NCBI GenBank assembly: GCA_003693705.1
Contig: RBZT01000286.1
Coordinates: 169,461 to 233,460, forward strand
Length of the DNA: 64,000 nt
Reading direction: 5' to 3'
Origin: Polymyxa betae A26-41
Taxonomy: Eukaryota > Protista > Endomyxa: Phytomyxea
Made by a program: the position numbers and the translations under genes. The notes beneath the pieces were generated by a model. It was not told the DNA's origin, ran no database searches, and saw only the letters and a list, made by a program, of their open reading frames with translations. The number at the start of each line of letters is the position of its first letter. The stretch's first letter is position 1. Below, one piece after another: positions 1 through 5,785 of this stretch.

Positions 1-390
1 ATAAATGCCTACCTAAATTGATGAGAGAAAGATTCGTGTCTTTGGCAAAGCATTGAAACTGCAGAAGAGTTAATGCGGGACGAGATAATTCACTGATAAA
101 CAAACGCGTAGAGAAACAAGCAGGGCAAGACAAAACGGCATCAGTTTGTGAAGTATCAATATCTTTCAAATTATTAGAATTCAGATAATTTCACAATAAA
201 ACAACAAACTCAAAGATTCCAGCAGCCATTTTTCATCTCGATCGTCTATTTCTGGATCATAAAGCTCGTCCGGATTGGGATATCTTAAAGTGTCATCTCC
301 GGAATCGTACTCTCCCATGATATTGCCATTGCCGTTGGCCTGTACATCACCACCGTTACGGGCATGAGAGTCGGTGTTGTGGGAACCCAT
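1..390 (-). CDS. EAPP: E2F-associated phosphoprotein (EAPP)-like, spliced, 3' end outside window
   Basis: Exon 1 has LYDPEIDDRDEKW. Manually spliced downstream exons give QTDAVLSCPACFSTLSMLCQRHE, the EAPP C-terminal cysteine motif. Confidence 0.8.
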
Positions 391-764
391 TTTACAGAAA
401 TCTGAAAAGATGATGCGCGGACAATTAAATCGCTTTTATATTCACGAACCAGTCTGATTTTTCAAGCGATTTAAGAACTAAAAAATGCCATTGTCATGAC
501 CCAGGTGCTGTCTGCAACAGATTACAACAACAGGAGTAGGATTATAGCCAAGTTGATTTATTGAGTTGGCGCAGCCCCATGGTCGAATTCGGTCAAGTAG
601 GTAGTCATAGTGTAACGTTTCCAGGAGGTTTCCTATTTCAGTATTCTGGGCTCTGCTGCTTCCGCTGGCTTCTTAACTGCCCGCCCTGTTTCACACATCT
701 AATTCTACCTCTATTTCTTATATTGTCATGTTCCTGGCCCCGGATTGCTGATTGCTGCTTCGTC

Positions 765-3700
765 ATGGTTTTGCTATTCGTCCGGAAAACTACCGGGACG
801 ACCTTATCGGTCGACATTGAGGTCCAGGCAACAGTGCTGGCTTTAAAGGAAACTTTGCATGCCATTGAAGGATCTGCACCGGCGAGACAAACTTTGATTT
901 TCGCCGGTCGAGTGTTAAAAGACGATGCAACTCTGCTCTCGTATAACATTACGAAAGAGTGTAGCATCCAGCTCTTCACCAGCGCTGTGCAGCGCCTGAA
1001 AGATGGAGAAGTACGTATGGAAACTACGATTCCAACATCGCAGACTAAATATTGTCGAAAGGATATAAAAAATGGTGAAAACGCTGGTCCAGCTCCGGTC
1101 GAGCTAACACCCGATTCCTCGCTGATCGAAGGGAAGAAGTTACCTCAAAGGATCTCGAGCGGAACATCGATAGGGGTTGCTTCATCAACGCGAAGTCATC
1201 AACAAGAAGGCGGTGTTTGTGACGTTTTAAGACACGGAGATATCGTTGTTATTAGATTGCTTGAGGCAAGGAACTTGGAACGCGCCGACTTCTGGCCAGG
1301 TTTAACGTTATGCATCCCCTTTACATCATTTCTTATCTGAAAGCAGTGCTATCCGGGTCGTCAGATCCATACGTGATCTTTGCATTAGGAAATAACAGTG
1401 CAAAGAGCAAAATTATTCGGCGAAATTTAAATCCCATTTGGAATGAGGTTTGATGCTATTGTGCGCTGGCAGAAATCGTGTTTTCATCCGTTCGTAGACC
1501 TTCGGTTTCCGTATCAACGAGGAAGATGAAAAAGCTGTATTGAGAGTTCTTGTTTTCGATTTCGATAACTTCACTCCAGATGACTTCATTGGATCTGTGG
1601 AAATCAATCTTAGCAGCCTCCAAAGGGGGAAAGTGATTGACAGATGGGTTGATTTGCAGAACGTGAAAACCGGACAGATACATTTGCAATTCCATCGTTC
1701 TATTCTGACATCGCCTTCTTTGAACACGATTGTTACCTCATTAATGGAGCTGGTAACGAATGATTCAAATATCGCTAGTCTCTTGCTCATTTACAACAAG
1801 GAACGGTCTTGGACGCCAGAAGATCTCTCACGGCATGGAATCAAGCTTGAACACCTAACTGGTGAATTAGCTTGGTTTACAGAAAACACAACCAATCCTG
1901 CAATCGAACATCTGGCTGAATCCATCCGTATGGGAAACATCGACTGGAAAGCGAGCTCCCTTGCGAGAATCGAAACTATTCTAACCAGTCAAGGGCTCTG
2001 TACTACCCCTGTCAGCAATTCTTTTCGAGTTTGGAAGCGGACTAATTGTTTCGTCTTTCAGGGTCTTCCTACTCCTTACATATGGTTTAGCGGAATCGCC
2101 AACGATTGCTCACCTACAGGACTAATTCAAGAAATATGCAAACATGCAGCCGTTAAGCACATCAACTTTCCCTCGAAGGGATGTGCATATGTTGGCTTCC
2201 GATCGATCTCCGATTCTCTTCTTTGTTTTCTCCATATGCAGCATAAACAGTATAGCAACGGCGTGCTGGAACTCGGATTTGGACGGGTATTTGTCGTTGT
2301 GGCTAGCATTATTGGCAAATTCCTGATTCTTTCGTTAAGTATATTCCACGAAATGACCCGTTTCTGACTTCATGCGGTCGAGCTGGATTTCTTCATATTT
2401 TCCATCCATCGATGGCAAATTGGATATATGGATGGATGTTTCTGGTAAATAATTCTATCCATTTTTTCAGTGATTTGCAAATTGATTCGCCCACTTTCTC
2501 GATGGATTTGGGTCGGATTTACATTTGTAGTCATGGTCCTAATTCGATTGAATTACATGACAAAAGCAAGCAACAGAGTGCATTTATTCGATCTGATTCC
2601 CATAATCAGATTGTCGATTGGAAATCAGTTTTCAAGAAAGTAATCATATGATTTATCAACTGCATCGTTCTCATAACTCTTGATCAGATCCAGCTGTCAT
2701 CAGCGCCAGGCAGTTTTCGAGCTGAACCCGGATGTATTCCCGAAGAAATCGTTCAGTCAGTTTCTTGTCGCTGTAACGACTGTTCGAAAGAATATCAGTT
2801 GAACGAAGTTTACTTTCACAAATCTTCTGAAAACTGCTCTAGCAACTACGTTTGCATTTACTGCTTGCGGCAAATAATTCTAAAGAAGGTTCTCGTTTTT
2901 TATCCTTTCTTCTACGGATTAATAATCGAAGTTTAGGTGGAATCTGGAGAAGTTACGTCGTTAGCTTCTGAATTTACCGTCCAAGATATTCGGGATCTTC
3001 TTTATGCGTCTGAATTCGAGTTATATCTTGATTCCAGTCTTCGGGAGTTATTGGATGCAGATGATAATTTTGTCAGATGTCCCAAATGCTCTGTCGCTGT
3101 CGAGTGAGTCACCTGTTCTCATTCTTGCTTGCGTATACCTACAAACTTTATAGATACGTTCGAGATGGTGTCCAAGATATGCCCGATTTTTCCAGGCTGG
3201 TTGGCGTCGACGGAAAAGCAATCAACATCTATACCCAGTCGCATTATCTCAATAATAGGTTGAGATGTCGAAACAGCCATTGCACAATTGATTTCTGCCG
3301 AAGCTGTCATGAGACACCTTATCATGCAGGTTTCGATTGTGAAGAATTTAAGGTCTTCAAGTCTGCAGGTTTGCTTATGAAATCTTTCAATGCATTCAAA
3401 TCGGTGACTGGCTTTAGAGCATTGTCGATTTTGTGATTGCGCCTTGCTCGTGGGCAAAACTTTGGCAACAGAGCCTCCTTCGAAAGCGTTAGAACGATGC
3501 TGCAACCAGGTGGACTGCTTGAGAAAACGTGATCAAGCTTGTCTTGAGTTCTTGCCTTGTGGCCATTATTGCGGTTTGCATCAAAAAAAGTTGCTGCCGT
3601 GCCAGAGCTGAAAGCTCTTTTGTAGGTGGTGTTCGGGACGAAAAGCATCATCCGCACTGCTTGTTCGATGACGTGAAACCAGAACAAGTTACACAAGACC

Positions 3701-4743
3701 ATTCCGACTTCTGTAATATATGCTTCACTGAACCCTTGGGTGCTTCTCCAGTCATCGAATTGGATTGTGGCCATTTCTTTCACTTTGAATGCGTCAAGAA
3801 GCGTCTGACGGAAAGGTAATGCTGGTTTTTCTGGGAGTTTCATTCTCATGACCTTCATCAGGTGGTCAACTCCTCAAATTACGTTTGGGTTCTGCAAGTG
3901 CCCCTTGTGCAAAATAAATATTCATCATGAGCTTCTCATCCCCTGTCTGAGTCCTATCTGGGAGTTACACAGAGGCATCGAAAATAAAGCATATAACCGT
4001 CTTATATACGAAGGTCTTCTAAAGAAAGAGGAGTTACAAGAAAATGGTATGGAAATGGTTGCCTTGTATGCTCATTTAAATTCATGTTTTAGGTCCGTAT
4101 TATCGAAATGCTATGGGTTTTGCAATCCAGTATTTCGCTTATTATATGTGTTTTAAATGCAAAGTATATAGTTGAACGTTTCCAGATCTTATTTTTGACC
4201 TGGAACAGGTCCCCTATTTTGGCGGCCAACCGCGGTGCAACGACGGCCTTGATCATTTTGATCCTTCAGAATTGGTGTGCGGCCCTTGCAGCGGAATCGG
4301 TGTGTCAGAGTGTACTACACATGGCAAGGAATTTATACAGTTCAAATGCCGGTTTTGTTGCAAGTATGTATTTCATATTCTGGTTCCATTATATCTAACC
4401 CATTTGTCCTTTAGTTTAAGTACTTGGTATTGCTGGGTATCGAACATATATCTCCATCATAAAGTATTAGCAAAACTGAGCAAAGACATAGGGAACTACT
4501 CACTTTTGCGACGACTGTCACCGAAGACAGGAAGCCCATGATTATATGAGCACCAAGTCCCAAGGGGAATTGATCCAATGTGAGGGCCCAGCCAAGTGTC
4601 CTTTGGGAATTGAACACCCTCCGTTCGTACATCTAATCTCTAGTAAGGATTTCACTGATGATCTTGCTTCTAGGAATGGTGAAGAGTTCAGCCTTGGTTG
4701 TTCACTTTGTCGTGGAGGAGCTGCTCAGCATTTGGCTCAGTGA
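765..4743 (+). CDS. Multidomain E3 ubiquitin ligase: UBL-C2-RRM-PH-RING-like-IBR followed by MYCBP2/Highwire-type RING and tandem-cysteine (RCR) module
   Basis: GT-AG junctions join all exons in frame from ATG 765 to TGA 4743. Motifs: QTLIFAGRVLKDDATLLSYNI (UBL); SSDPYVIF..NLNPIWNE..VFDFDNF..DDFIG (C2); KGCAYVGF (RNP1); CPKC..CRNSHCTIDFCRSCHETPYH (IBR); CNICFTEPLGASPVIELDCGHFFH and [47 protein letters not shown] (MYCBP2 C-terminus). Confidence 0.85.
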
Positions 4744-4826
4744 GAACTTTCAATCATGCTGTGTATGCGGCTTACTACTTAACCAGTTACAAATAAATAT
4801 TTAATTGATGGTGTGATAACAGTGTA

Positions 4827-5785
4827 TTAAACATGGAAAATTTTCTTGAAATTTGGTTCTTCTTCTTCGGTACCGTCATTCGCAGTCACTATCATAGAAC
4901 GGTGTGTTGACGTTCTGCTTAACTTGTACCGATATTTCACTTTCCTTATTTCCTGATCGACGCCTTCGTATGAGCAGTGTTTTAGACGATGAATAATGGG
5001 AACGATTACGATTTCTCTGATCTTGTCGTCTACCTGATATAACTTGTTTACATGCCACTTGAATACAAACGATTGCATACTTTAGTGAACACCTCCTCTG
5101 GAATTTCCATCTCCCGGAATCGAGTATACATCAGCGTTAGAGCATCACAGAGATTTACGACGGTGAATGTATAATCAAGTTCACATGGCTGTATGAAAAA
5201 TAAATGAAGCAATCATTATCTTAAGCATTGACGAACAATATTGCAGTTGAAAAGATACTCAAAGACTAACTTCTTGCCGGATTTCGCTACCGAAGGCTTT
5301 TCTTTAGCTGAGACACCTGCCAGAGGTTCTCGGCAATCAACAGGTTTACTTAATGCAGAAGGCACGATTTCGCGATGACCCGAATATTTGGCCTCTAATT
5401 CTTCAAACATTAGCAACAGAGCACGACTGAGATCTGCTGCTGATTTCATGGTCAATAAACGTGAGCATGATATTCCCAAAACAAATAACTCTTCAACACT
5501 GCAAACCTGTTCAGATTTGATTAACTCATTGGATTGCCTGCATTACGATAGATGTTTTGTTGACTTTTGTCGAGAGATTTGAACAGGATCGACGCGAACC
5601 ATTCCAAGCCACATGGCTCCATCGGTCTCATGAGCTAGCCGTATCTGATCTAGTGTGTGCAGACGCCTGACAATGCAATGCGTCACGGACGAGGCTGGAG
5701 ACAATTTGGAACCTCGGGTGGCATGATTTTTCATACGCCTGATGGATGTCAGGCTGGTAAGTGCTGTAGCTTGTTCAGATGTCAT
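4827..5785 (-). CDS. Hypothetical protein (spliced, probably conserved)
   Basis: Three to four coding-like exons with GT-AG ends (RRLHTLDQIRLAHE..MWLGMV; LFVLGIS..ALLLMFEELE; FEYL..ELDY..LCDALTLMY; VDDKIREIV). Start codon uncertain (5734 or 5785). Confidence 0.55.

Follow-up and report, generated by a model that had tools for sequence, protein, structure and literature searches.

The window analysed here, a stretch of 64,000 nucleotides (nt) from Polymyxa betae A26-41 (assembly GCA_003693705.1, contig RBZT01000286.1, positions 169,461 to 233,460 of the forward strand), carries on its plus strand at 765-4743 a single gene for a protein of 1045 amino acids (aa). The protein ends in a complete RING-Cys-relay (RCR) module, whose animal homologue is formed by the last 300 residues of MYCBP2. 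In the RCR mechanism, ubiquitin passes from a RING-bound ubiquitin-conjugating enzyme (E2) to a first cysteine and is relayed over ~24 Å to a second one, where a triad of Cys, His and Glu attaches it to Thr or Ser through an ester bond (PMC9527308, PMC9120709); the C4520S mutant of MYCBP2 is inactive (PMC12664034). The literature treats this chemistry as peculiar to one giant animal protein. We suggest, with a probability of roughly 0.8, that the window gene encodes an active RCR-type ubiquitin ligase (E3). Its domains follow each other in the order ubiquitin-like (UBL) domain, C2 domain, conserved helical segment, RRM-like domain, PH domain, RING-like domain, IBR domain, zinc finger, RING and tandem-cysteine (TC) domain.

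One gene of 18 exons

The transcript evidence consists of Logan contigs of the runs X3, X8 and X12, which come from three studies and were aligned to positions 300-5300 of the window. In the contigs of all three runs the 17 introns are removed, with GT..AG ends at each predicted junction, and the mRNA extends over ~584-4805. The introns measure 45-55 nt. Two contigs, one of 3381 nt that starts at 584 and one of 3181 nt, each span the entire coding region alone, and the gene therefore gives rise to one transcript. A two-gene or mis-joined model was considered and ruled out by these single contigs across all exons. The coding frame of 3138 nt has its sole stop at the end (frame, length and motif positions were obtained with a local script). 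In a search of sequencing runs, every sampled word of the sequence was found in two DNA runs and 0.62-0.66 of the words in ten more runs, which is the share that spliced cDNA would give.

A first-pass annotation, made from the sequence alone, had joined all exons in frame into one protein and had named RNA sequencing as the check for a single transcript. The contigs bear out the single protein, and no two separate genes appear in them. Its estimate of roughly 1100 aa was too high, since four in-frame introns (1011-1061, 1753-1800, 2011-2061 and 4623-4673, together worth 67 aa) had been read through; the remaining thirteen introns were borne out. One exon deserves mention for its size. The micro-exon at 4415-4436, only 22 nt long, lies between introns of 51 and 55 nt and carries the codon of the downstream catalytic cysteine, and its joints 4363->4415 and 4436->4492 are present in all three runs. 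Gene predictors could easily overlook such an exon in the RCR family.

The RCR module and its catalytic residues

The window exons were searched singly, and the steps that need a whole protein (full-length searches and folds) were carried out with database orthologues. When compared with solved structures by phmmer, exons 12, 13 and 15 matched only the MYCBP2 RCR entries 5O6C/6T7F, and the three matches are colinear on chain 5o6c_A (residues 5-44, E = 1.4e-10; 48-105, 2e-12; 136-188, 5.6e-12). The RCR module of the orthologue P0001 aligns with residues 7-259 of the same chain at 1.1e-75. Pfam gave no match in any of the TC-domain exons, and exon 17 alone found only chance matches to USP12 in the PDB because it is too short.

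Both relay cysteines are encoded by the TGC codons to which the first-pass annotation had assigned them (Table 1), and its alignment of the two with C4520 and C4572 of MYCBP2 was confirmed on 5o6c_A, where they correspond to chain residues 143 and 195; residue 143 equals C4520 provided that the chain starts at 4378. The spacing CC-x6-C-x-G-T-T-H-F-C is the same as in MYCBP2 with the acceptor at 4415, the junction seen in the transcripts. The catalytic His and Glu of the window protein, H989 and E941, align with residues that we take to be H4583 and E4534 of MYCBP2, two numbers that fit the chain numbering, and the Cys/His ligand columns of the TC domain are conserved with MYCBP2 in the family alignment. 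The sequence features expected of an RCR enzyme are present: a RING directly upstream of the TC domain, a TC domain homologous to MYCBP2 4500-4640, an upstream Cys in a GG-x3-C loop, and a downstream Cys with His and Glu.

Conservation was counted among 242 collected relatives, with the motif-matched sequences as denominators. Of these, 164/166 retain the triad His, 187/187 the acid (E in 147, D in 40) and 157/166 the Phe of THFC. Directly behind the downstream Cys, 117 family members have W and 43 have F, and the window protein has W979. The near invariance of the His, the acid and the Phe argues for selection on catalysis. This result bears on the possibility that the TC domain is a structural zinc module only and that the protein is an ordinary RING adaptor E3 modifying lysines directly from the E2, a view that the canonical RING would fit and that gains some room from the fact that the RCR activity data cover non-protist members only. 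However, none of the four residues concerned (both Cys, the His and the acid) binds zinc in MYCBP2, and yet they are near-invariant from protists to animals, which is hard to explain without catalysis, and we regard this explanation as highly improbable.

Table 1. Features of the RCR-type gene and their positions in the window
Feature	Position	Strand	Evidence
5' untranslated region	584..764	+	contigs of X3 and X8 begin at 584 and 596
Exons 1-6	765-1010, 1062-1299, 1347-1447, 1498-1752, 1801-2010, 2062-2286	+	transcript contigs
Exons 7-12	2340-2639, 2688-2888, 2937-3103, 3154-3368, 3418-3573, 3626-3815	+	transcript contigs
Exons 13-18	3862-4046, 4093-4163, 4209-4363, 4415-4436, 4492-4622, 4674-4743	+	transcript contigs
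Exon 1: start codon and UBL domain, aa 1-82	765..1010	+	Pfam PF00240, 2.5e-17, residues 4-73; joint 1010->1062 in 3 runs
Exon 2: Ser-rich linker, start of C2 domain from ~1235	1062..1299	+	transcript joints; alignment to orthologue C2 domains
Exons 3-4: remainder of C2 domain, then start of helical segment	1347..1752	+	Pfam C2 PF00168, 5.6e-8 and 9.5e-9 (two exons); orthologues 1e-23
Exon 5 (with 1696-1752): conserved helical segment, ~90 aa	1801..2010	+	81-82% identity to P. brassicae P0153 (P0153 270-365)
Exon 6: RRM-like domain; RNP2-like IWFSGI, RNP1-like KGCAYVGF	2062..2286	+	weak PDB matches: SHARP RRM 0.12, U2AF65 UHM 0.8
Exon 7: PH domain	2340..2639	+	Pfam PH 0.017 (weak); PH in 8/11 orthologues, best 2e-8
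Exon 8: degenerate RING1 (CNDC ... CIYC)	2688..2888	+	family consensus comparison; fold matches RBR RING1
Exons 9-10: RING1-IBR helical linker and IBR (RCPKC ... CRNSHCTIDFCRSCHETPYHAGFDC)	2937..3368	+	weak PDB matches: RNF216, ARIH1, FBXO5; Pfam IBR in relatives
Exon 11 and start of exon 12 (intron 3574-3625): Cys-rich zinc finger (CRFC ... CC..C ... CGHYCGG ... HC)	3418..3700	+	BLASTP, alignment
Across exons 12/13 (intron 3816-3861): RCR RING (CNICF ... CGHFFHFEC ... CPLCK)	3701..3915	+	Pfam zf-RING_2 6.4e-7; phmmer 5o6c_A
Rest of exon 13 and exon 14 (intron 4047-4092): linker helix and helix-turn-helix between RING and TC	3916..4163	+	colinear with 5o6c_A 48-105; family alignment
Exons 15-18, including stop: TC domain	4209..4743	+	exon 15 phmmer 5o6c_A 136-188, 5.6e-12; junctions in contigs
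C930, upstream (mediator-loop) relay Cys = MYCBP2 C4520	TGC 4236..4238	+	YFGGQPRC vs YFGGEARC, chain residue 143
E941 in DPSELVCG, catalytic-triad Glu (presumably E4534)	4269..4271	+	alignment to chain residue 157
C978, downstream (esterifying) Cys = MYCBP2 C4572, in micro-exon 4415-4436	TGC 4431..4433	+	chain residue 195
H989 in CDDCHRRQ, catalytic-triad His (presumably H4583)	4519..4521	+	alignment to chain residue 206

The flanks of the gene hold a few further features. In the 5' untranslated region, the sequence shows an upstream open reading frame (ORF) of 7 codons from ATG 728 to TGA 751. At the other end, an X8 contig of 4236 nt runs on into the convergent minus-strand neighbour (gene 4827-5785; 4813-5030 onward), and either the 3' ends of both genes overlap or the assembler merged them. 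Upstream, a minus-strand ORF at 181-390 encodes 69 aa rich in Gly, Asn and Asp and shows high contig depth in RNA-derived runs; we take it as the probable exon 1 of a divergently transcribed gene.

Domains upstream of the RCR module

An alignment of 61 sequences, covering the stretch between the PH domain and the RCR RING, yields a consensus with a RING1 of the C3HC4 type, then a helical linker, an IBR of the C6HC type and one more Cys-rich finger. Exons 9-10 of the window gene hold the C6HC pattern of the IBR, which follows a helical linker in an arrangement with RING1 that is like that of the RING-between-RING (RBR) ligases. RING1 itself lacks the eight zinc ligands (C3HC4) of an RBR ligase. 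The family consensus is C-x2-C..C-x-H-x2-C-x2-C..C-x4-C, and an intact C3HC4 RING1 is found in other family members; in the window protein and in the subfamily with UBL and C2 domains (UBL-C2 type), four of the eight ligands are left (C1, C2, C5 and C6), and the second zinc site is gone, with neither the His nor the last pair of Cys retained. We therefore regard RING1 as a relic in the window protein and in the UBL-C2 subfamily.

The fold of this region was modelled with P0153, the orthologue from Plasmodiophora brassicae. An AlphaFold (AF2) model of P0153 560-835 reached a predicted local distance difference test score (pLDDT) of 88.9, and its top Foldseek matches were all RBR ligases, namely RNF216, HOIL-1, HOIP, Parkin, HHARI and ARIH2. 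VIA-align placed model residues 22-194 on the RING1-IBR part of ARIH2, Parkin, HOIP, RNF216 and HOIL-1 with Z scores of 8-9.5 and a root-mean-square deviation of 3-4 Å over 125-134 residues. In this model, RING1-IBR has an RBR-like fold.

The segment after the IBR is of another kind. Its Cys-rich zinc finger is common to the protists and animal MYCBP2, where it is located just upstream of the RING and outside the crystallised MYCBP2 construct, and BLASTP aligned P0153 756-1059 with residues 4139-4437 of a long animal-type protein at 39% identity (5e-69). In the long animal-type protein P0081, the zinc finger stands at 4131-4208. Modelled alone, the finger reached an AF2 pLDDT of 87; it had no sequence match in the PDB and no fold match (best Foldseek E of 1.1, best VIA Z of 2.6). 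We considered whether it might be a disguised RING2/Rcat and rejected this, as the ligand pattern is different, the finger is common to MYCBP2, and no PDB sequence or Rcat/IBR fold matched it. We see no sign that this finger, placed between the IBR and the RCR RING, was derived from RBR ligases. A RING2/Rcat with a catalytic cysteine is not present after the IBR, where the MYCBP2-type zinc finger stands. The RBR-like fold of RING1-IBR in the model, taken together with a finger that is not an Rcat, supports an architecture in which the front half of an RBR ligase leads into a zinc finger, a RING and a TC domain of the MYCBP2 type and a RING2 is missing. The idea that the RCR module takes the place of the RBR RING2 is thus supported as far as the architecture goes, with the orthologue RING1-IBR model lying on RBR ligases and no Rcat following the IBR.

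Such an architecture could also work as a hybrid, in which the RBR-type RING1-IBR docks the ubiquitin-charged E2 (UbcH7-like, in the open conformation), a Cys of the TC domain receives the ubiquitin, and the TC domain functionally replaces RING2/Rcat. The RBR-like arrangement of RING1-IBR, with no Rcat after it, and the intact C3HC4 RING1 of many family members are what this hand-off would predict. However, zinc site II of RING1 is lost in the window protein and in the entire UBL-C2 clade, the RCR RING is fully conserved, and animal MYCBP2 works without RING1-IBR. We consider the hybrid hand-off very unlikely and favour docking of the E2 at the RCR RING.

In the N-terminal half, the UBL domain lacks a C-terminal GG. 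The C2 domain, when aligned with its orthologues, shows acidic loop residues (..ADF.., SDPY and FDFDNFTPDD), the pattern expected of calcium-binding C2 domains. The helical segment between the C2 and RRM-like domains (1696-2010) had no Pfam match and no usable Atlas match. The RRM-like domain has in its RNP1 a Cys at a position that is usually aromatic, and the RNP1-like motif of the orthologues, GFAF(V/I)DF, is more canonical than that of the window protein. Among the window's own exons, the Pfam matches to ubiquitin (2.5e-17), C2 and zf-RING_2 (6.4e-7) are significant, and PH, RRM and IBR are significant only in orthologues. In eleven proteins of the UBL-C2 type, Pfam found C2 in 10, RING in 10, ubiquitin in 9, PH in 8, IBR in 2 and RRM_1 in 2, with best E-values of 1.5e-6 for RRM_1, 3e-7 for IBR and 2e-8 for PH. 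Every domain named in the first-pass annotation is thus supported at the family level, and the order that it gave, UBL-C2-RRM-PH-RING-like-IBR-RING-tandem Cys, stands, with UBL, C2 and RING recognised in the window and PH, RRM and IBR in the orthologues.

These domains raise the question of what the enzyme would modify. One possibility is that it forms ubiquitin esters with hydroxyls outside proteins, for example those of lipid head groups in membranes or of the ribose in RNA, and that it is recruited to them by its C2 and PH domains or by its RRM-like domain. The esterifying triad is kept, the C2 domain has its acidic loop residues, PH and RRM occur in the family with a canonical RNP1-like motif in the orthologues, and a review (PMC13270118) describes other E3s that ubiquitinate lipids, glycans and nucleic acids. 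The suggestion is nevertheless purely inferential, as C2, PH and RRM domains serve equally often as protein-interaction or localisation modules, and both the Cys in the window RNP1 and a PH domain without a basic motif speak against it. We consider non-protein substrates unlikely and take a Thr or Ser hydroxyl to be the more probable target.

Mechanism, relatives and known systems

By homology with MYCBP2, we suggest that the window protein would be a cytosolic enzyme whose RCR RING (aa ~800-850) docks an E2 loaded with ubiquitin. The ubiquitin would be transferred as a thioester to C930 in the mobile loop of the TC domain and relayed to C978, which, in a triad with H989 and E941, would discharge it onto the hydroxyl of Thr or Ser and not onto lysine. 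RING1-IBR, with RING1 minus one zinc site, may act as a regulatory or ubiquitin-binding scaffold and not as the E2 dock. The UBL, C2, RRM-like and PH domains may place or gate the enzyme; the C2 domain could mediate calcium-dependent recruitment to membranes, and the UBL domain could exert intramolecular control in the manner of Parkin or HOIL-1. Membrane targeting, RNA binding, autoregulation by the UBL domain and non-lysine chemistry are all properties that we infer from the sequence.

Several observations weigh against this interpretation. The biochemistry of the RCR mechanism comes from animal proteins alone. A RING1 without half its zinc ligands weakens any RBR-like function, and the evidence for the RBR-type fold comes from models of the P. 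brassicae orthologue and not of the window protein, the two being 50-87% identical when their exons are compared singly. The PH match of the window is sub-threshold in Pfam (0.017) with no obvious basic phosphoinositide-binding motif, and its RRM match is weak (PDB 0.12 for SHARP, 0.8 for the U2AF65 UHM). The substrate pocket has also changed. Three aromatics, which we take to be F4573, F4578 and F4586, presumably line the pocket for the Thr methyl group in MYCBP2, and two of the three differ in the window protein, which has W for F behind the downstream Cys and Q in the column of F4586. The Thr preference may therefore not be conserved.

The first-pass annotation had called for a search for the same architecture across protists, and the family proved to be widespread there. 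Exon 15, searched against 1.84 billion representative proteins, gave 349 matches at E <= 1e-3, ranging from fragments to proteins of >4000 aa, with many of 550-1200 aa; the best of them, the orthologue P0001, was the query of the full-length family search. Members were found in Rhizaria (Plasmodiophora, Spongospora, a cercozoan, Bonamia and Reticulomyxa), ciliates (Tetrahymena, Stentor, Blepharisma, Stylonychia and Pseudocohnilembus), Amoebozoa (Dictyostelium purpureum and Cavenderia), Blastocystis and a haptophyte. In the databases, most of these proteins bear the names 'hypothetical' or 'RING-type domain-containing', and one each is named 'RCR-type E3 ubiquitin transferase' and 'MYCBP2', both automatically. 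The exact window protein was not found in the protein databases searched via P0001 and P0153, and the nearest entry is from P. brassicae. A paralogue from Spongospora subterranea (P0169) shows 42-60% identity.

When 94 RCR modules were placed in a quick maximum-likelihood tree, the UBL-C2 type formed one clade (Shimodaira-Hasegawa approximate likelihood ratio test, SH-aLRT, 99), and seven long proteins (>1900 aa) formed another (98), nested among the short protist forms. From their length and their end-to-end similarity in the RCR module, the seven are taken to be animal MYCBP2 orthologues. As the tree is midpoint-drawn only, we claim no direction of evolution. The P. betae genome itself holds further family members. 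A paralogue at C162:36165-38292 (+) (L002, L005-L007) has a zinc finger CRFC..CSHPCSG, a RING CNICW..CGHIFH and the motifs YFGGKRECGD and KCRYCC..VWFC, and the paralogues at C503:1912-4241 (-) and C503:13249-13767 (-) (L003, L004, L009) were seen by their zinc finger.

The class of enzyme is known, and the architecture in the window is a new variant of it. We found no paper on this architecture or on RCR proteins outside animals, which are represented by sequences and a few automatic names in the databases. The claim of an undescribed system stands in so far as the architecture is concerned; the gene is not unique, as it belongs to a wide protist family in which some members have been named automatically. 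A compendium of human E3s places RCR among the 'atypical' ligases (PMC13061254), and a review notes that MYCBP2 is conserved between C. elegans and mammals (PMC9120709). An RCR engine with intact catalytic residues is common in protists, behind an RBR-type RING1-IBR and in one clade also behind UBL, C2, RRM and PH domains. This suggests that the RBR and RCR classes may be linked in evolution, provides small and tractable RCR enzymes for biochemistry and structure (1045 aa here, 550-800 aa in relatives), and makes it testable whether hydroxyl-directed ubiquitination is ancient and whether it is used on membranes or RNA. Since the nearest named relative is from P. brassicae, the clubroot pathogen (PMC9831288), it may also bear on plasmodiophorid cell biology. 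It is conceivable, but rather doubtful, that RCR is an ancient eukaryotic invention that ancestrally had an RBR-like RING1-IBR, that MYCBP2 is a derived offshoot, and that the UBL-C2-RRM-PH form is aimed at non-protein hydroxyls, either calcium-dependently at membrane lipids or at RNA. If this were true, protists would have a ubiquitin 'esterase-in-reverse' for lipids or nucleic acids.

Compared with known systems, the closest named orthologue is PBRA_005101 of P. brassicae (P0153, 'hypothetical protein'). It is 1066 aa long, its domains follow the same order, and in the conserved exons it is 50-87% identical to the window protein; no paper mentioning it was found when orthologue locus tags were searched in the literature. 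Its annotated C terminus ('..IEHPPS..VSC..CAHA') lacks the final CxxC of the TC domain. The annotation apparently reads into the last intron (4623-4673 in the window), by which the CxxC is lost, and this is likely an error of the gene model. The short protist proteins, such as DFA_01858 of Cavenderia fasciculata (the 'RCR-type E3 ubiquitin transferase' of UniRef) and those of Tetrahymena, Stentor, Spongospora and Dictyostelium purpureum, have the same core of RING1, IBR, zinc finger, RING and TC domain. However, they are mostly 550-800 aa long, with an intact C3HC4 RING1 and without the UBL/C2/RRM/PH front.

Animal MYCBP2 shares with the window protein the zinc finger, RING, linker helices and TC domain, with 37-44% identity over ~300 residues, and the two agree in both relay Cys, in the catalytic His and Glu and in the pattern of zinc ligands; where MYCBP2 has F behind the downstream Cys, the window protein has W. 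Beyond the module the two differ. MYCBP2 has ~4600 aa, and its architecture comprises RCC1-like, PHR, RAE1-binding, F-box-binding and Myc-binding regions (PMC9120709). BLASTP similarity to the long animal-type proteins ends at the zinc finger with none upstream, where the window type has UBL, C2, RRM, PH and IBR in Pfam. The window protein is thus not a PHR protein, that is, a strict MYCBP2 orthologue, which would carry RCC1-like, PHR and RAE1-, FBXO45- and Myc-binding regions upstream of the RCR module.

The RBR E3s (Parkin, HOIL-1/RBCK1, HOIP, ARIH1/2 and RNF216) have RING1, helical linker and IBR in the same fold and order (Z 8-9.5), and Parkin and HOIL-1 also have an N-terminal ubiquitin-like domain, as does the window protein. 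HOIL-1 is also known to form ester bonds (PMC6613137). Unlike the RBR E3s, which have a RING2/Rcat with a catalytic Cys, the window protein has neither and lacks one zinc site of RING1, and catalysis would be expected from its RCR module.

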